Below the pieces are notes generated by a model. The model ran no database searches, was not told the DNA's origin, and saw only the letters and a list, made by a program, of their open reading frames with translations. Made by a program: the position numbers and the translations under genes. A stretch of DNA of 64,000 bases from positions 124,579,418 to 124,643,417 of the forward strand of contig NC_068985.1 of the NCBI RefSeq assembly GCF_001194135.2. Direction: 5' to 3'. Source of the stretch: Octopus bimaculoides (lineage: Eukaryota). The number at the start of each line of letters is the position of its first letter. The first letter of the stretch is position 1. Shown in pieces: positions 5,350 to 62,428 of the stretch.

Positions 5350-6660
5350 ATAGCAAAGAAAGAGACATTTGTAATGATCAAAGACCATTAACCAAACTTT
5401 GCTTCTAACCCCAAATGCCATTTGATCAACCTTGCAAAGTCTGAGATTGGCTTCGTAAGCAAGTAGCTGATTAGAAGGATCAACAATGAGGCCTCACTCT
5501 CTGGTATAACACCAACAAGGTCATCACATGGTTTAAAACCAACAGCAGCAGGAGTAGATCAAGGTTTACCTAATTTGATATTGTGGATTGTTGCCTGTCT
5601 GCATCAAAGGTGTTATTGTATAGGGCACTGGATTTGGTAGTATCTATACTGAGATTAGAGATGAAGATGAAAGCATTATCATGCATGCCAGAAAGACTCT
5701 ACTCATCAACAAGGGTTTGGCTTGGACCAAATGCTCTAGACCAGAAGGCTCATTTGATTTAGCAAGGGGGGCATTTCATGAGGCTGACGTGTATGATTTT
5801 ATTGGGTGTTTATTTTTTTTTGTCCTGAGCTTACTTAATAAGTTCCCTTCTACTAGCTTTGCTCTCTACAGGTACAATGCTTTGACAATATCAAGAGGAG
5901 TGAATTATCATACATGCAATAGACTTAGGAAGGACCTCCCTTTCCATGAATTCTCTTGAGCCCAAGATCACAATAGAAACCAACACGAAGACAGTTAATT
6001 TTCTTCATATGACATTGAACTTGGAATCCAGTGCCTATAGGTTCTTTAGGAAACTGAATGAGAGGCTGACATACGTTAACACAACTTTCTGTCATCCAGC
6101 CATAGTGTTCAGGAACCTAGTAAAGGGGGTCAGCAGAAAAATCTCTAGCTTGTCTTCAAGTAAACAGTTTTGATGTCACTGCCCCCTACTATAATGAAGT
6201 TCTAATTGTCAGCAGCTTTAAGGATAGGATTAGTTACATGCTAGATCCTAACCCCTTCTAAGAAAGAAAAAATGCACCACCAGAAAGTTTTGTGGTTCAG
6301 ACCCACTTTCTCCCTAAAGAGAAGTAAGTTTTTCTTTAGATTAGTGGATAAATACTTTCCTCATATGAATAGGTTCTGTAAAACTTTTGATTGTCATACC
6401 TGAAGAGTTTCTTTTCGCTGTGCACCTAATGTGAAAAAATATATCATTAAGTAGGCCCACACCTGAAGCAGAGTTAGAATGCTCATGCAGAGGCAACATA
6501 GAGACACTTGTATATGAGGCAGGGGTAACATCAAAGAGCCCCAGTGTCAAATATGGGAAAGTTTATGGACACAACAGAATGTCCTTACAGAGCCAAATTT
6601 AACATTTTATTAATGAAGTAAATAAGTGTTATTATCATGGATGCTGTTCCAAATGCTAGT
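5350..6660 (+). mobile_element. Decayed Penelope-like element (RT and start of GIY-YIG), old family
   Basis: Frameshifted translations KDH*PNFASNPKCHLINLAKSEIG, HARKTLLINKGLAWTK...FDLARGAF, KITIETNTKTVNFLHMTLNL...HPAIVFRNLVKGVSRKISSLSS match PLE RT motifs recalled from knowledge. Many stops. Confidence 0.8.
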
Positions 6661-7289
6661 CTGCAAATGAGGTATATCATCTTGTGTAGAACAGGCATAA
6701 GTAAACAGAGATGTTTCTTCAGTAAAAATCTCAAATAATTGACTGTGTGTTATGTAATGGATAAATAGCTAATTAAAATAAAGCCTGTATTATGTAATAG
6801 AGTAAATATTTATTTAAAACAAAGCCTGTCATCAATAATTAAAAAAAAAAACCTCTCCTCAAAATGATATTTCTCCCTTCAGTGCTCTAACATACTCTTT
6901 GTATTAACAGTGAAGAATGTCTAAGAAGCCCTTTGACTGCAGGTAAAATTTTACCTACCTTTAAATTTGAGACTGCCATTAACAAATTTCTCTACAACCC
7001 TATATGAAAGAAAAAAGGTTCAAGCCTTCAAACCAAGCAAGTAATTTAATATAGATTAGATACCTATCAATTTGTAAAATTAAAGGGACATTAGTTTTTT
7101 CAGTACATATGTGTACTGAAAATACCTGCAAGTGTACAGGTTCTTGTACACTTGCAGTTCACTCTGAATATTAAAAAGACCCCTTACCTGCTCCACTGTC
7201 ACAGAACCTGCTAGAAATATGAACTTAATCTCCTTTAAATCACTTAAAATCATTTTTGAAAAAAATACAAGGATACATTAAATAATGTA

Positions 7290-7488
7290 TTTACATTATT
7301 TACATTTGATGGATATTTGTCCTCAACGTTTTGGCTGATATACCCTCCAGCCTTCATCAGGTGTTTTGGGGAAATTTCGAACCTGGGTTCTCATTCCTAA
7401 GGTATTTTTCGATGTTGGATATATGGCGTAGTGGTTAAGAGCACGGGCTACTAACCCCAAGATTCCGAGTTCGATTCTAGGCAGTGAT

Positions 7489-7522
<34 letters not shown>

Positions 7523-7695
7523 TCGAAAAATACCTTAGGAATGAGAACCCAGGTTCGAAATTTCCCCAAGACACATGATGAAGGCTGGAGGGTATATCAG
7601 CCGAAACATTGTGTTAACAACAAACAAGATGAGGACAAATATCTGTCAAATGTAAATAATGTAAATAATTCCTCATCTCTTAAATATAGAACTGT
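7290..7695 (+). mobile_element. Non-autonomous PLE-derived element A: inverted pLTR arm + tRNA head + (AAT)n + forward pLTR arm
   Basis: Arms ~7290-7416 and ~7521-7680 are inverted. Head TGGCGTAGTGG...GTTCGATTC at ~7417-7490. 13-bp TSD ATTAAATAATGTA at 7277-7289 and 7696-7708. Confidence 0.85.
7570..7615 (+). ncRNA. Degenerate type-I hammerhead ribozyme (element A forward arm)
   Basis: GACAC-ATGATGA-A-GGCTG..CAGCC-GAAAC-ATT-GTGTT: core C3 changed to A and stem III G changed to A versus the intact copy at 18278. Confidence 0.6.
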
Positions 7696-8569
7696 ATTAA
7701 ATAATGTAGTTTATAGATATATTGTGTATAAAAAACAAAAGAAAAGGTGATGGTCCAGGCCAGAATTCCTTTGAAGTCTGCTTAATCATGGTTGACCTAG
7801 TGTTCAGCAACAACAATTTCATTCGTTTTGACTTTCACTAAATTGGCATTTGCTAACATAAGCCTTTTCTATTAGTCTCTATAAATTTTCACCCTACCTT
7901 GCTTTGGATCCATAATTGCTGCAGATTTTGGCCTGCAACAGTTTAAATAGAACATTGATGGTATCAAGCTCTCCAGCTGTTAAGAACAGTGAGACTAGTG
8001 AGTTTGATGTCATTAGTGTTCATGGAAATTATCTCTTCCTCCAGACTTAGCAAATATAAAAGAAATGGGCTTGCTACTGTTTCTTATAGTGTCTTAGATG
8101 GGACCTACACCAATTCAGATCAGCCACAGCTGATTTCTTCTAGAAAGAGAGAACTGGTACTTTATTAATTGACCTCTTGGGCAGGACTACTCCCTCATTT
8201 ATTGAACCTCGAAAGAATGAAAAGCAAAGTCAATGTCAGTGGAACTTGAACTCAGAATGCATAGAGCTAGAATGTCTCAAAGTATTCTATATGATGCTCT
8301 AATGACTCGCAATATGCAGCCCATGAGGTCTTGTAATCATCAATGGTTTAATTAAATCTGTTTTTTGAAGAAGTTTTCTGTAGAGCTTCCCAATTAAGAG
8401 GTCCCCATAGGAACATTGTGTATATGTACATATGTGAGTCTTTAAAACATGTAATCACATGACTATCTATCAGCTCTCAAACTGAAAATGAAGCAATGGT
8501 TTTTGCCATGTGTTAATTGATGCTCTACAGAACAGCTTGCCACCCTGTTTGTCGGTCACAGGCGTGCAC

Positions 8570-17580: not shown

Positions 17581-18277
17581 TAACGATAAGATGATAAAAC
17601 CTCTTAACATGTCTAACAGAAAATTTTTCAAATTTCTAGATATTTCATGTCGCACTAAAGTAAAATGAAATAAAATAGCAATTATAATAAAACCAACATT
17701 AATTATTACTTGAGAACAACTGAGTGGTACTATGTAGAAGATGTTGAGGATAGTTCTTATATTGGGAGAATGGCTTTATAAGAACTGGCTGTGAAATAAG
17801 ATAATTTAGTGCTTACAAACCAAAGACAACAATCAACAATGTCTGTGTTTTATAAATGCCGATTTTCTCTACCAATATACATTTTTGAAATGTGTTTTTG
17901 TATAGATAATACAAAAGAGTTACAGCTATATTATAAGACAAACTGAAGACAGATAAATGTCATAATACCTAGTGCATATATTCTCCTTCTTTCTCTCAGA
18001 TACTCTTTCTCCCCACACACACACACACACACACTCAATGTAACATCTGCACTATAGAGTGGTACATATCTGCTTAACAGTCAGGTTTGTAATATAGTTT
18101 TGACACCCAGTCAAGGTATCTAACTTAACTCACAGCTATTATCTTTCTCTCAGATTAAAAGGGCTTAACACCTTTCACAACAGACCTTCTTCACATCACA
18201 GTTCTATATTTAAGAGATGAGGAATTATTTACATTATTTACATTTGACAGATATTTGTCCTCATCTTGTTTGTTGTT

Positions 18278-18323
18278 AACACAACGTTTCGGCTGATATA
18301 CCCTCCAGCCTTCATCAGGTGTC
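18278..18323 (-). ncRNA. Intact minimal type-I hammerhead ribozyme (element B left arm)
   Basis: GACAC-CTGATGA-A-GGCTG-GAGGGTATAT-CAGCC-GAAAC-GTT-GTGTT: stem I GACAC/GTGTT, 5-bp stem II, palindromic AACGTT stem III, GUU site. Confidence 0.8.
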
Positions 18324-18613
18324 TTGGGGAAATTTTGAACCTGGGTTCTCATTCCTAAGGTATTTTTTGATGTTATTATTGTTATTATTATTATTATTCA
18401 GGTCACTGCCTGGAATCGAACTCGGAATCTTAGGGTTAGTAGCCCGCACTCTTAACCACTAGGCCATATGCCCATGGGCATATGGCGTAGTGGTTAAGAG
18501 CATGGGCTACTAACCCCAAGATTCCGAGTTCGATTCCAGGCAGTGATCTGAATAATAATAATAACATCGAAAAATACCTTAGGAATGAGAACCCAGGTTC
18601 GAAATTTCCCCAA

Positions 18614-18659
18614 GACACCTGATGAAGGCTGGAGGGTATATCAGTCGAAACATTGTGTT
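18614..18659 (+). ncRNA. Hammerhead ribozyme, CpG-decayed (element B right arm)
   Basis: Same fold with CAGTC (G-U wobble) and GAAACATT (stem III mismatch). Confidence 0.6.
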
Positions 18660-19017
18660 AACAACAAACAAGATGAGGACAAATATCTGTCAAATGTAAA
18701 TAATGTAAATAATGTACTTCTTCACATTCCTTAGAATGTGACTCAAGTAAAAACCAAAGACCCAATCTTCCGGAATGCTATACTTTCACTTTTTAAAATT
18801 ATTTTTGTTTTATTTAATTATTTAAATGCTAATTAACAACATAAAGTAGTAGTACAAAGTCACAGTTTCCACCAACTCAGTATCATTTCAGTTTTTGTTT
18901 CATTTTTTTTTTTTTTACAGCAGTAAATAACTTAACGAAAAAAATGGGAGATTTTATTTCCACATTTAGTGATAAGTAAAATTAATGTAATTCATTTGTT
19001 TTACCATCACCTAACAG

Positions 19018-54276: not shown

Positions 54277-54632
54277 AAAACAGAGAGAAAAAAAATGAAT
54301 GTGAAGATGTGCACAAGAAACATTAATTTGATGCTCAGTGAAAGGAGTTCATGTTTCAAGCATAGCTCTTCATCAGAAAGAGAAAATTCCAAAGAAAAAG
54401 AAGGAAAAATAAGGGAAAATTGTCAGCAATCCATGTGTGGTTACATTTCAGAAATGTAATTGCATGTGGATTGTTGGCAATTTTTCCTTATTCTTCCTTC
54501 TTTCTCTTTGGACTTTTCTCTTTCCAATGAAGAGCTATGCTCAAAACATTAACAACTCTCTCCTTTCACTGAACATCAAATTAATATATTTCTTGTGCAC
54601 ATCTTCACATTCATTTTTTTTCTCTCTGTTTT
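54277..54632. repeat. About 355-bp palindrome of two inverted PLE-like pLTR arms with dead hammerheads
   Basis: Centre ACATTTC-A-GAAATGT at 54450. Arms contain CTGATGAAGAGCTATGCTTGAAAC (minus) and CCAATGAAGAGCTATGCTCAAAAC (plus). Confidence 0.8.
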
Positions 54633-58639: not shown

Positions 58640-58845
58640 TTTTTGCCACAAGGGCAGCTTGCGGAAGATTGGGATGAGTCGATTACATTGACCTTAGTAT
58701 TCAACTGGTACTTATTTTACCGGTCCCGAAAAGATGAAAGGTAAATTCGACCTCGGCGGAATTTGAACTCAGAACGTAGCGACAGACGAAATACCGCGAA
58801 GCATTTCGCCCAGCGTGCTAACGTTTCTGCCCGCTCGCCGCCTTA
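58640..58845 (-). mobile_element. AT-rich SINE, CpG-intact copy
   Basis: TTCGACCTCGGCGGAATTTGAACTCAGAACGTAGCGACAGACGAAATACCGCG. Confidence 0.8.
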
Positions 58846-59347
58846 GATTGTTGCTTAATTATAATCAAAAGAAACCACTCATTTTTAGGAGCATCCTCGA
58901 TTACTTTTCTTTATGAAGACAGTTTTGCAGGAGATTTGCGTCCTCCAACTTCCTGTAGATAGAGGGACCGTATAGAAGCTCCTTAACGGTTGTAAAATTG
59001 GTTTGAATTGCCAAATATTTTATTTACCATTACACTGTATTTACATCATACGTACATTCAATAAATTATCATTGTGTGAGTCATGCAGGACATATGAATT
59101 ATTGCATATTATGAATATTCGTTGATTGAAACTACTAGTTAAGGTTTATGACCCGGAGAAAAAAAATAGGTTGAGAAACTACCATGGTAAAAATAACCAA
59201 CTCGCACAAATCCTGAAATAACTCCTTGATTATGTAGAATTTGCCAGGAGAATGACTCAGAAACTATAGAGCAGGGGTATAAAAAATAAACATAAACCGT
59301 ATATTATTTACATTTGACGGATATTTGTCCTCATCTTGTTTGTTGTT

Positions 59348-59393
59348 AACACAACGTTTCGGCTGATATACCCTCCAGCCTTCGTCAGGTGTC
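59348..59393 (-). ncRNA. Intact minimal type-I hammerhead ribozyme (CUGACGA variant)
   Basis: GACAC-CTGACGA-A-GGCTG..CAGCC-GAAAC-GTT-GTGTT. Confidence 0.8.
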
Positions 59394-59704
59394 TTGGGGA
59401 AATTTCGAACCTGGGTTCTCATTCCTAACGATGTTACTATTATTATAGTAGGAGATATTGATAAATCGGGTATAGCTGATCATGTATGGAAAAATGGAAA
59501 CCACATCCCCCTGTGGGATGAAGTTAAAATAATAGACAGGGAACAACACTGGAAAATACGAAAAGAAGCAGCACATATGCTAGGACACAACAACCTCCTA
59601 AGCAGACCGAGTGCAGATATGAATAGCATATGGGAACCGGTATTAAGGAAGGATAGAAAAATAATAGATTTATAAGCCTTAAAATTCACCCCAGAATTGC
59701 TTAC

Positions 59705-59780
59705 GGGCATATGGCGTAGTGGTTAAGAGCACGGGCTACTAACCCCAAGTTTCCGAGTTCGATTCACGGCAGCGACCTGA
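59705..59780 (+). promoter_or_regulatory. tRNA-derived Pol III type-2 promoter inside the Penelope pLTR
   Basis: A-box TGGCGTAGTGG at 59712-59722, B-box GTTCGATTC at 59757-59765, anticodon-like arm GGG-CTACTAA-CCC. Confidence 0.7.
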
Positions 59781-60959
59781 TTAATAATTAACAACAAACA
59801 CAATGAGGACAAATATCCGTCAAATGTAAATAATGTTAATAATTCCTCATCTCTTAAATATAGAACTGTATTATCTAATCGGTACGGAGCCGACATTAGA
59901 CTTCATTGGAGACATATAGAGAAACTCCATCAAAAACTAGCTCGTCTTTCAAACCATCTAACTTTCCTGTGTAGATGTAGAGACTCGAAGCTAATACCAC
60001 CTGGCTTGAATATAATGACACCAGAAAGAGAATCCAACAAGATCTAGGAAAATCGTACATGAAAGAATTTGAAACGGTGAAGACACGCCAGATTAAGAAG
60101 TTTATGAAACTCAAAGGTCAGAGAATGAAGACTGAAGTCCATCACCCACCTGTGAAAGCAGTGATTAATGGAAGTNNNNNNNNNNNNNNNNNNNNNNNNN
60201 NNNNNNNNNNNNNNNNNNNNNNNNNNNNNNNNNNNNNNNNNNNNNNNNNNNNNNNNNNNNNNNNNNNNNNNNNNNNNNNNNNNNNNNNNNNNNNNNNNNN
60301 NNNNNNNNNNNNNNNNNNNNNNNNNNNNNNNNNNNNNNNNNNNNNNNNNNNNNNNNNNNNNNNNNNNNNNNNNNNNNNNNNNNNNNNNNNNNNNNNNNNN
60401 NNNNNNNNNNNNNNNNNNNNNNNNNNNNNNNNNNNNNNNNNNNNNNNNNNNNNNNNNNNNNNNNNNNNNNNNNNNNNNNNNNNNNNNNNNNNNNNNNNNN
60501 NNNNNNNNNNNNNNNNNNNNNNNNNNNNNNNNNNNNNNNNNNNNNGTTGTCACAGATATTGATCAAGAACAAGGATCACTTCACACCAATGAAGTACAGA
60601 CAGCTGACTCTACACTACAGTAAACTACCACACATGTACGGTCTCCCTAAGATTCACAAGGAAGGTATTCCACTAAGACCTATAGTGAGCTGTAGGGGTT
60701 CAGCATGTCATCCACTGAGCCGCTTCTTGGTGGATATAATCAGTCCATTAGCAGGAAAGTCAACATCATGCGTGAAGAATTCCATCCACTTCACAGAATT
60801 GATCAAGAATACCCCCATTGAATCCAACCAGATGGTGAGTCTAGATGTGATAAGCCTGTTCACCAAAGTCCCAACTGGTGAAGCACTATCGGTGATTCAA
60901 GAAAAACTAGTGACAGACATCCATCAAAAAGAACGCACTAGTATACCAATAACACTACA

Positions 60960-61098
60960 GCGGCGAGCTGGCAGAATCGTTAACACTCCGGCAAAATGCT
61001 TAGCAATATTTCGTCCGTCTTTACGTTCTGAGTTCAAATTCCGCAGAGGTCGGCTTTGCTTTCATCCTTTCAGGGTCGATAAAATAAGTACCAGTTAC
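60960..61098 (+). mobile_element. AT-rich SINE truncating the Penelope RT
   Basis: GCGGCGAGCTGGCAGAATCGTTAAC...AAGTACCAGTTA, CpG-rich. Confidence 0.8.
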
Positions 61099-61440
61099 CC
61101 TGTGCCCCAACTGAACTATTTCTTCCAGCCTGTGGCGTTTGAGACGTTTGGAGGGACTGGGCAGCTAACGACGAAGTCTTCGTCATCGTTGGCGGCTCGC
61201 CTTGCTGAGGTGTCAGGTGATGTCCGTGAGGGTGCTTGGCTGTTCCAACGCCTTAGCCTCGAAATCGCCCGTGATAAGACCGCGATCGATTGAGGCACTT
61301 GGTGTTGAATTGGTGCTTTTTTACTCTTTTTTAATTTTTGCTTTTCTTTCCTTGTACCGCTTTCTCTATATTTTTTCTCCCGCTATTGGATTTATATGTG
61401 CAGTTACCCCCCCTTGACAGCGGGGTTAAACCAATTGAAC
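61099..61440 (+). mobile_element. CRE-like RLE LINE 3' end
   Basis: YFFQPVAFETFGG...LAARLAEVSGDVREGAWLFQRLSLEIAR. Confidence 0.65.
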
Positions 61441-61614: not shown

Positions 61615-62030
61615 GGCACTATCATGCTATTAGCTGTCAGAAGTGAAAGTTCGCGCGTCCGCGCTAGCTAGTCGTGAGTAGAAAACACAAATTTAATATA
61701 AAAACATATTTCCTGAAATTGCAAATTATTTAAAATATAAAAATATAATTTCCAACAGAGAGAATTTATCAAAATAGAAAACAAATGAAGTTTGAAGTTT
61801 AAAAATAATAGGATCGACCACTCACGACTAGCTAGCGCGGACGCGCGAACTTTCGAGTAATAGATAGAGAGAGAGAGAGACAGACAGACATATAGCTCGC
61901 TCCGGCCAGTCATGGTATTAGCTGTCAGTAGCCAAAGAATCAACAGGCATGCAGGCAGACAGGCAGACAGACAGATACTTCACTAGCAGTGAGCACTTTC
62001 ACTTCTGACAGCTAATAGCATGACAGTGCC
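61615..62030. mobile_element. MITE with 36-bp TIRs and 8-bp TSD (Merlin-like termini)
   Basis: TIRs GGCACT(A/G)TCATGCTATTAGCTGTCAGAAGTGAAAGT at 61615-61650 and 61995-62030. TSD TTTTCGCC at 61607-61614 and 62031-62038. Confidence 0.85.
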
Positions 62031-62072: not shown

Positions 62073-62428
62073 CACTTCTTAAAGCACGTGGGTTTGTTTA
62101 TATTTCTGAACAAGATCGTCGCTTTCCGTAATATTTTTTTTTTTTACTTATGTGGGGGGGAAGAGGGGATCTTTTGAAGTCGGCGTAAAAGCGAAAGGGA
62201 CACAGAGAGAGCGAGAGCGCGATTGGAAGAGGGAACTTATCTTTTGAAGTCGGCGTGAAGCGAAGGAAGTGATGTGTGTTTGATGGGGTGTGCGAGACAG
62301 AAAGTGTGGCGTGTATGTCTACGCCGATTTCAAATGATCCCTTCTTCCCCAAAGTAAGTAATTTTTTTTTTTACGGAAAGCGACGATCTTGTTTAGAAAC
62401 ATAAACAAGCCTACGTGGTTTATGAGTG
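62073..62428. mobile_element. MITE-like element with ~60-bp imperfect TIRs and internal repeats
   Basis: AACAAGATCGTCGCTTTCCGTAA in both orientations. Internal GGAAGAGGG..TTTTGAAGTCGGCGT x2 plus one inverted copy. Confidence 0.7.

Follow-up and report, generated by a model that had tools for sequence, protein, structure and literature searches.

We consider a Penelope-like element (PLE) in a stretch of 64,000 nucleotides of the Octopus bimaculoides genome (contig NC_068985.1, positions 124,579,418 to 124,643,417), which we call the window and whose numbering we use throughout. The locus at 59300-60955 is a decayed, rearranged copy of an endonuclease-positive (EN+) PLE, and its pseudo-long terminal repeat (pseudo-LTR) contains a tRNA-related head with an A box and a B-box-like motif. 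Comparing this copy with its relatives, we find it rather probable that a lineage of PLEs carries a conserved, tRNA-derived promoter of the RNA polymerase III (Pol III) type in its pseudo-LTR, and that this promoter launches RNAs running from head to tail, like those of short interspersed elements (SINEs), which are copied by the PLE enzyme.

The element and its relatives

By every feature tested, the coding element is a regular PLE. Its reverse transcriptase (RT) fragment at 60547-60954 has 200 homologues at E<=1e-3 and is 61-77% identical to its relatives, and the GIY-YIG endonuclease fragment that precedes the repeat is 58-67% identical to theirs (tblastn). Pfam gives no match on the window fragments; the RT block of one relative, L007, matches RVT_1 with 30.6 bits (cut-off 29.6), and its matches in the PDB are a group-II-intron-like RT and telomerase RT. 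The same relative has the GIY-YIG motif CVYFIPCCCGKIYKGETGHPLKVRLEEH (found by motif inspection, with no Pfam match) directly before the segment homologous to window 59448-59672. The features that define EN+ PLEs are all found: an RT of the PLE/TERT type, a C-terminal GIY-YIG, pseudo-LTRs with an optional 'tail' of 30-40 nt, and a hammerhead ribozyme. On the plus strand of the window the order is upstream GIY-YIG fragment, repeat and open reading frame (ORF), and the relatives too have pseudo-LTRs of this kind.

The relatives (L001 to L012) are contigs found from homologues of the RT fragment, and the sampling is narrow, with most of them from one assembly, ERZ21867824. The PLEs of this assembly are 70-77% identical in nucleotides to the window PLE, and the assembly is without the abundant SINE of the window, so that it represents a different taxon. 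The head-bearing subfamilies are the L003 family (L002, L003, L004, L006, L007 and L010), L001, L012 and the window family. Three more distant PLEs from three other assemblies (L008, L009 and L011; 44-53% amino-acid identity) are headless, and in them the stop codon is followed by the hammerhead at a distance of about 100-140 nt. The features of the window locus are as follows.

59300-59343, minus strand: inverted pseudo-LTR arm, outer 'tail' or RT-initiation segment (match to the unit at 18476-18714)
59344-59396, minus strand: minimal type-I hammerhead with intact core (core pattern search)
59397-59446, minus strand: inverted arm, spacer with GGTTCGAA hairpin and (AAT)n end, stopping short of the head
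59448-59675, plus strand: GIY-YIG C-terminal half (76 codons) of a 5'-truncated upstream PLE unit (ORF listing, tblastn)
59669-59676, plus strand: TATA-like TTTATAAG, overlapping the GIY-YIG stop, at -34 from the head start
59673-59675, plus strand: TAA stop of the GIY-YIG fragment
59705-59777, plus strand: tRNA-related head, 73 nt, starting GGGCATATGGCGTAGTGGTTAAGAGCACGGGCTACTAACCCCAAGTTTCCGAGTTCGATTCAC, after a 29 nt spacer behind the stop codon
59712-59722, plus strand: A box TGGCGTAGTGG, in the head
59755-59765, plus strand: B-box-like AGTTCGATTC, in the head
59778-59787, plus strand: (AAT)n remnant, junction of a deletion of ~105 nt (compared with the units 7421-7669 and 18476-18714)
59788-59852, plus strand: AC-rich loop AACAACAAAC and 'tail', running into the ORF (common to the outer ends of the mini-elements)
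59853-60175, plus strand: N-terminal region of the PLE ORF, broken by a frameshift near 60026-60045 and by TAG at 60045-60047 (translations, tblastn to L001 and L004)
60176-60545: assembly gap, equal to 363 nt (121 codons) in relatives
60547-60954, plus strand: N-terminal part of the RT, ending abruptly at 60955
60955-61100, plus strand: unrelated SINE abutting the RT end, outside the PLE (inverted copy at 58703-58846)

The tRNA-related head is inherited with the pseudo-LTR

Alignment across the subfamilies firmly indicates that the A/B-box module is a conserved, inherited part of the pseudo-LTR of this EN+ PLE lineage. The first-pass annotation of the window had described a head with A and B boxes 30 nt after the GIY-YIG stop, and this is what we find, with the head at 59705-59777 behind the TAA at 59673-59675. 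It had also allowed that the head might be present in a minority of copies, as after a secondary SINE insertion. Instead, the head is in all four of the window repeat arms that reach that far and in nine of the ten such pseudo-LTRs of ERZ21867824, thirteen of fourteen together, and its flank is homologous between subfamilies. The single headless pseudo-LTR, the 3' repeat of L012, has a 330-nt deletion, and the inverted 5' arm of the same copy keeps a degenerate head. In L001, L002 (two arms), L003, L004, L006, L007, L010 and the inverted arm of L012, a homologous head follows the GIY-YIG stop and precedes the hammerhead, and the order GIY-YIG stop, 3' untranslated region, head, spacer, hammerhead and tail is kept across four subfamilies.

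Within the aligned heads, conservation is concentrated in two islands, an A-box block (ATGGCGTARYGGTTAWAG) and a B-box block (GTTCRA..C), with a 20-nt indel in the middle. The 45 nt 5' of the head also align across subfamilies, including TTTATAAG at -34, which is kept in the window copy, in L001 and in six copies of the L003 family. Because this flank is conserved, the junction of stop codon, 30 nt and head is native PLE sequence and not the scar of a template switch. The pattern TGGCNNAGTGG-N(25-45)-RGTTCGANNC has four matches in the 64 kb, all of them heads, and none in 100 shuffles; the L003 head retains TGGCGTAACGG...GGTTCAATCC. Nowhere in the window did we find the head joined to anything except this PLE repeat.

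Two of the headless PLEs offer a comparison. In L008 and L011 a TATA(A)AAG precedes the hammerhead by about 32 nt, with no head between the two, an arrangement consistent with a Pol II-type promoter of ordinary PLE design. The sites, with the variant hammerhead cores that follow them, are these.

L008 7010-7060: CCTATA(T)AAAG and hammerhead, core UUGAAGA
L011 4700-4770, minus strand: CCTATA(T)AAAG and hammerhead, core CUGAGGA

Next to these sequences it looks as if the head-bearing lineage had gained a tRNA-derived piece and a spacer (230-330 nt), set after the TATA-like motif and ahead of the ribozyme.

ORF-less units built from the same repeat

Three loci of the window (59300-60955, 7288-7705 and 18198-18714) are built from one unit, which in full consists of the head, (AAT)n, a spacer with the GGTTCGAA hairpin, CUGAUGA...GAAAC, and AACAACAAAC...GTAAATAATG(TAAATAATTCCTCATCTCTTAAATATAGAACTGTATTA). 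Altogether the window holds four copies of the head and six of the AC-rich 'tail'. Two of the three loci contain no PLE ORF.

7288-7705: ORF-less inverted dimer; minus arm headless, plus arm with head, (AAT)13, hammerhead and long tail
18198-18714: ORF-less head-to-head inverted dimer; both arms complete, from the first base of the head to the tail

The first of these has an AT-rich duplicated flank, AAATAATGTA, on either side. In the second, both arms start at GGGCATATGG, and the dimer is bounded by an 11-bp target duplication, CTTCTTCACAT. The hammerhead and tail of both are identical to those of the PLE repeat. These mini-elements have several marks of SINEs, being short and non-coding with a 3' part common to an autonomous partner, and with a target duplication at 18198-18714. 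Their outer ends follow two alternatives ~30 nt apart (18714 as against 18198 and 7705). In every mini-element and 3' repeat, the first run of four or more T (T4+) comes 313-405 nt from the head start.

What is known of the PLE enzyme bears on these structures. A purified PLE protein cuts DNA at AT-rich sites and extends both of the strands (Frangieh et al., PMC11167929), and its cDNA starts internally, at an AC-rich stem-loop just downstream of the hammerhead, from two sites 30-40 nt apart that account for the genomic 'tail' (PMC11167929). Cleavage of both strands and internal starts predict alternative ends, AT-rich or duplicated targets, and inverted dimers, as observed here. We therefore regard it as firm that the ORF-less head-to-tail units were copied by PLE machinery.

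The number of repeats in the (AAT)n tract that separates head from spacer differs among copies, from 2 to ~13 (sites at 7480-7520, 18380-18400, 18545-18560 and 59430-59446), and the inverted arm has its junction in this tract, at 59446/59447. Since a characterised PLE endonuclease cuts preferentially at ATT (PMC11167929), the tract may be a self-target.

The hammerhead ribozyme

The first-pass annotation had overlooked both the hammerhead and the inverted arm (59300-59446) that contains it. The hammerhead of this minus arm, at 59344-59396, reads GACAC-CUGACGA-A-GGCUG-loop-CAGCC-GAAAC-GUU/GUGUU, and the consensus is GACAC-CUGAUGA-A-GGCUG-GAGGGUAUAU-CAGCC-GAAAC-GUU/GUGUU. It has a full core, an unpaired base 5' of helix II, a helix I of 4-5 bp and, for helix III, nothing beyond the self-complementary ACGU. 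A pattern search for the core CUGAUGA-A-helix II-GAAAC-GUU with a helix I of 4-5 bp finds 14 instances. In a gap-free alignment of 13 of them, 79% of the cells pair, compared with 17-52% in slid registers, and one pair of helix II is U-A in the window family and C-G in relatives. The minus arm of 18198-18714 has a fully canonical core.

The predicted ribozyme matches the 'min-HHR' of PLE pseudo-LTRs, for which two motifs separated by 100-700 bp and lying on opposite strands have also been described (Cervera and De la Pena, PMC4209133). The Rfam hammerhead models, run at gathering score and at E<=10, give no score on the candidate ribozymes, which is as expected for a motif without helix III.

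Two further CUGAUGA...GAAAC cores with a pairable helix II, at 54376 (minus) and 36815 (plus) (CTGATGAAGAGCTATGCTTGAAAC; CTGATGAGGTATAATAATACTGAAAC), may, from their sequence, be minimal hammerheads of other PLE remnants. A second motif, GGTTCGAA/GAGTTCGA, stands 10-25 nt upstream of the hammerhead and is kept in all subfamilies; in the window family it lies inside a small hairpin. The motif could represent another B box, or it could belong to loop 1 of the ribozyme. Its sites are listed here.

Window, 18590-18605
Window, 59405-59420, minus strand
L003, 4890-4900
L007, 12050-12062
L001, 7118-7125

Avoidance of T runs and TTT codons

According to the first-pass annotation, the sense strand of the window copy is free of TTTT and rich in A runs. 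Our count agrees: the 1139 nt of 59447-60175 and 60546-60955 contain no TTTT and ten A4+ runs. There is likewise none between the window head (59705) and 61317. The same annotation had left room for T4+ runs in a full consensus or in the segment lost to the assembly gap. The majority-rule sequence of the L003 family (built from five relatives) has none, and neither do L001, L010, L012 and the segment of L001 and L004 that corresponds to the gap. The counts of T4+ runs are compared with their expectations below.

L003-family majority-rule sequence: 2292 nt, 0 against 2.9 expected
L001: 2033 nt, 0 against 2.3 expected
L010: 1669 nt, 0 against 3.4 expected
L012: 1802 nt, 0 against 1.7 expected
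L009, headless: 1999 nt, 13 against 10.8 expected
L008, headless: 1202 nt, 3 against 2.7 expected
L011, headless: 1560 nt, 5 against 2.7 expected
Other PLE of the window, 5350-6660: 1311 nt, 9 against 9.7 expected

The pooled head-bearing lineage has 0 T4+ runs in about 7-9 kb, where about 8 are expected. The other PLE of the window, which the first-pass annotation had contrasted with this one as rich in such runs, has them at about the density that its composition predicts.

For a test that preserves the protein, codons were drawn from the background usage of the same loci. The number of T4+ runs expected with the protein fixed is then 3.9 for the L003 family (P=0.009), 4.1 for L001 (P=0.007) and 1.7 for the window (P=0.15). 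A shuffle of synonymous codons is uninformative, as it retains the already biased codon usage, and it was superseded by this resampling.

The phenylalanine codons follow the same trend. The four in the RT segment of the window are all TTC, as had been noted before, while the N-terminal segment 60026-60175 has two TTT. The ratios of TTT to TTC are as follows.

L003-family majority: 1:13
L001: 0:14
Window: 2:5
Headless PLEs (L008, L009, L011): 28:30
Other ORF-like stretches of the same loci: 189:126

The head-bearing ratio of 3:32 differs from the 28:30 of the headless PLEs with p=8e-5 (Fisher's test). The other NNT:NNC pairs of the L003-family majority stand at 78:57, so that codons ending in T are not generally avoided.

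A proposed mechanism and its alternatives

In this lineage the pseudo-LTR consists, in order, of the TATA-like motif, the A/B-box module, an AT-rich or (AAT)n spacer, the minimal hammerhead, and the AC-rich loop and 'tail', followed by the ORF, an architecture kept in four subfamilies and two genomes. In the mechanism that we propose, the tRNA-derived module would serve as an internal Pol III promoter, with the RNA starting at the first base of the head and reading from head to tail and through to the first T-run in the flanking DNA. The PLE protein would bind the hammerhead or tail, nick AT-rich DNA on both strands and begin the cDNA internally. SINE-like copies would result, and a SINE would lie nested inside the terminal repeat of its autonomous partner. 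The purge of T-runs and TTT suggests that the head promoter may also read through the ORF in tandem copies. On its sequence, the module likely acts as a Pol III promoter, possibly aided by the TATA-like motif upstream; the predicted RNA start, the first base of the head, is exactly where the arms of the complete mini-elements begin. As the PLE RT starts internally, read-through transcripts of Pol III would need no defined 3' end.

A number of results weigh against this proposal. ARAGORN finds no tRNA in the window and six loci. The Rfam tRNA model aligns with positions 8-63 of the sister head at 18483-18540 at 13.5 bits and E=4.2, under the gathering score of 29, and gives no match on the L003 head. 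With these misses, and that of the hammerhead models, we defined head and hammerhead through motifs, alignments and comparison. Pol II could be brought to the head start by the TATA-like motif at -34, and the ORF-less copies, which are without this motif, could have been dead on arrival, as products of master PLE loci. The ORF of the sampled relatives has an inverted arm upstream or is 5'-truncated, and a head upstream of the ORF on the same strand occurs only in the window copy. As for the T-runs, the window on its own expects 1.37 T4 (dinucleotide shuffles), and finding none has P(0)=0.21, which is not significant alone. The T4 statistics generally have small expected counts and come from subfamilies of shared ancestry, GGG is likewise depleted, so that part of the triplet bias comes from coding constraints, and the headless comparators are few (three or four).

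Two claims of the first-pass annotation come out of this in modified form. The loss of terminators is supported by the relatives, which have no T4 where headless PLEs have the expected density, and not by the window copy taken singly. The description of the head as tRNA-derived stands for the specific pattern of A and B boxes and falls short for the tRNA as a whole: no cloverleaf or stable fold is found in the heads, whose fold energies are no better than those of shuffles (z +1.65 to -1.3). The head appears only modestly tRNA-like, with promoter-type sequence conserved rather than RNA structure. The absence of a fold, together with conservation in the A and B blocks, argues against a role of the RNase P/Z type and for a role at the level of DNA, as a promoter.

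A more far-reaching form of the proposal, which we hold tentatively and as somewhat doubtful, extends Pol III transcription to the whole element. Starting at the head of an upstream pseudo-LTR, Pol III would transcribe the entire autonomous unit of ~2.5-3 kb to the next RT-initiation site, the hammerhead would remove the tRNA-like leader, and T4 runs would have been purged for this reason. The result would be an autonomous coding retrotransposon lineage with an internal Pol III promoter of its own, terminators purged from ~2.5 kb of coding sequence, and a hammerhead that sheds the leader. R2 sets a precedent by joining non-Pol II transcription to a ribozyme (PMC6765202). The T-run data also speak for this extension: T4+ runs are absent over four head-bearing subfamilies, the window included, in both the ORF and the gap-equivalent segment, and from the window head to 61317; TTT is specifically avoided whereas other NNT codons are not; and headless PLEs, even L011 with its lower T content, carry T4 runs and use TTT freely. 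On the other side, Pol III transcripts have no cap and no poly(A), and translation of the ORF from such RNA would need a special route. The want of a same-strand head before the ORF in any sampled relative and the small expected T4 counts also tell against it, avoidance of U-runs could serve RNA stability or prevent premature 3' processing, and the TATA-like motif could serve Pol II. This last point leads to an alternative that we consider unlikely, in which the element is transcribed by Pol II, guided to the head by the TATA-like motif at -34, much as the TATA box before the hammerhead would guide it in headless relatives. The head would then be a 5' leader, either exapted or neutral, and T-runs would be avoided for some other cause. 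The motif is conserved at that position, L008 and L011 have TATA(A)AAG at a similar place ~32 nt upstream of their hammerheads, the upstream arms are inverted in most copies, and PLE pseudo-LTRs have been described as bearing promoters (PMC6765202, PMC11167929). Pol II transcription would, however, leave unexplained why conservation is best at the A and B boxes of a head without tRNA structure, and why avoidance of T4 and TTT is specific to this lineage. Upstream TATA elements, moreover, occur also in Pol III genes with internal promoters.

Two other explanations seem much less probable. The tRNA-like piece might act in the RNA, as an RNase P/Z processing signal or a protein-binding structure that sets the RNA ends together with the hammerhead. 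The 5' ends of the units coincide with the first base of the head, and the head lies between ORF and ribozyme, as this would have it; yet there is no acceptor stem or cloverleaf, the folds are no more stable than those of shuffles, the tRNA covariance score is far under threshold, and conservation is concentrated in the sequence blocks of the A and B boxes. The folds disfavour a tRNA-like structure of the RNase P/Z type, and we give an RNA-level role little weight. To a secondary event, in which an unrelated tRNA-SINE was inserted or template-switched into this one PLE copy, we give next to none. The window copy is indeed rearranged (inverted arm, deletion, truncation), and ORF-less head-bearing units lie nearby. 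But the 30-45 nt upstream of the window head are homologous to the flank in three other subfamilies, which rules out an insertion or template-switch junction at this point, the head is at the same position in nine of ten pseudo-LTRs of another genome, and it is attached only to this PLE repeat.

State of the window copy and its surroundings

The copy in the window is dead: its upstream unit is truncated, its plus-strand hammerhead deleted, its ORF broken by a frameshift and a stop, and its RT cut at 60955, beyond which no further PLE coding sequence is found in the window. The two repeat arms are recognised by an inverted repeat of 47 nt (59303-59349 and 59788-59834, 96% complementary), and the inverted arm 59446-59300 matches positions 77-232 of the unit at 18476-18714 at 90% (blastn; 147 nt). 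Compared with intact units, the plus-strand repeat at 59705-59852 is short by ~105 nt, with spacer and hammerhead gone. The flanks of the assembly gap are exactly 363 nt apart in L001 and L004, in a single frame, and the corresponding span in the window is 371 nt (370 N and one base). This spacing shows that both sides of the gap are collinear in one PLE ORF and that the gap length is about right.

The ~105-nt deletion of the plus arm starts in (AAT)n and, on its right, stops 3-4 nt away from the predicted hammerhead cut. We do not press the idea that it is the footprint of a hammerhead-cleaved RNA, since a similar deletion in L012 ends inside loop II. With these two independent internal deletions of pseudo-LTRs (59778-59787, and L012 9640-9650), the head, the 5' half of the hammerhead or both have been lost. 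Among the relatives, L002, L003, L007 and L010 have a common 5' boundary inside the ORF after a short inverted tail (e.g. L007 9784-9836), which suggests a 5'-deleted subfamily that propagated as such.

The PLE locus is flanked by an inverted pair of tRNA-type SINEs, at 58703-58846 (minus) and 60955-61096 (plus), which are 79-87% complementary. That the RT ends exactly at the right-hand SINE, with the rest of the PLE gone, suggests a later rearrangement or deletion and not a simple insertion. Further downstream, nested inverted repeats at 61615-62030 (61645-61679 with 61820-61854, 100%; 61615-61650 with 61995-62030, 97%; AT-rich core) look like a miniature inverted-repeat transposable element or a long hairpin; Rfam gives on this segment only a chance-level match to MIR841 (21.9 bits, gathering score 200). 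The (GA)n and (GACA)n microsatellites at 61866-61990 adjoin this foldback structure. Another inverted repeat of 55 nt, at 62077-62131 and 62371-62425 (89% complementary, 239 nt apart), is possibly another small foldback element.

Comparison with known systems

The element resembles canonical EN+ PLEs of the Penelope/Poseidon type, such as PAc of Anolis and Penelope of Drosophila virilis, in its partial tandem or inverted pseudo-LTRs, its minimal type-I hammerhead, its optional 'tail' of 30-40 nt, its internal RT initiation past the hammerhead and its AT-rich targets (PMC4209133, PMC11167929, PMC8557442). It differs from them by the A/B-box module of 70-110 nt and the spacer between TATA-like motif and hammerhead, and by a coding strand depleted of T4 runs and TTT codons. 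In the PLE literature searched, we found no description of a tRNA or Pol III element in PLEs or of T-run avoidance in a PLE ORF, in agreement with the first-pass annotation, which knew of no PLE of this design. To judge by that literature, both the tRNA-type module inside a PLE's own pseudo-LTR and the T-run avoidance in its ORF would be new.

Internal Pol III promoters are a hallmark of non-coding SINEs. The tRNA-derived SINEs that have their 3' region in common with a partner, a long interspersed element (LINE), lack an ORF; an internal promoter lies in their tRNA-related head, their 3' part is identical to the region that the RT of the partner recognises, and they have target duplications. 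The ORF-less units here are similar in their tRNA-related head, their partner-identical 3' part and their target duplications. They are unlike LINE-partnered SINEs in that the partner is a PLE, that the head is present also inside this autonomous partner, and that the shared part is the junction of pseudo-LTR and ORF, as the PLE RT starts internally.

For Sm-alpha of schistosomes, association with a PLE has long been suspected. Sm-alpha and Sj-alpha are SINE-like elements, short and non-coding, in which a Pol III promoter of tRNA origin is joined to a hammerhead (PMC2770079, PMC6765202). By their architecture alone, the units at 7288-7705 and 18198-18714 belong to this type. Unlike Sm-alpha, they are physically within the terminal repeat of a coding PLE, so that the partner is identified; their hammerhead is of the minimal PLE type and not canonical, and they form inverted dimers and not tandem, satellite-like arrays. 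Animal non-LTR retrozymes are also non-autonomous, hammerhead-bearing derivatives of PLE pseudo-LTRs (bioRxiv 10.64898/2026.07.22.740005). They are arranged as direct tandem repeats, presumably have a circular RNA in their cycle, and have no tRNA head described, whereas here we find inverted dimers whose head is of the Pol III type. In the window and the relative loci there are no direct tandem arrays of hammerhead monomers, only inverted dimers or single arms.

The usual view of autonomous retrotransposons is that Pol II transcribes them, R2 being an exception that relies on Pol I. R2 is co-transcribed by Pol I, and a self-cleaving ribozyme like that of hepatitis delta virus (HDV) trims its 5' leader (PMC6765202). 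If the more far-reaching form of our proposal is true, R2 is the nearest functional analogue, and the PLE would be a Pol III counterpart of its strategy of Pol I and HDV-like ribozyme; R2 uses the promoter of the host rDNA where this PLE would use its own, and it differs in RT clade, ribozyme and polymerase. The lineage-specific avoidance of T-runs makes the PLE a concrete candidate for Pol III transcription of a coding retroelement. Such transcription fits the internal initiation of PLE RTs, by which read-through Pol III transcripts with ragged 3' ends would become usable templates. The SINE-like unit within the PLE terminal repeat identifies PLEs as partners of SINE-like elements that join a tRNA-related head to a hammerhead, and a route comes into view by which SINEs can arise from within their autonomous partner: if the more far-reaching form holds, a SINE would here be born inside its partner and not through a chance fusion.

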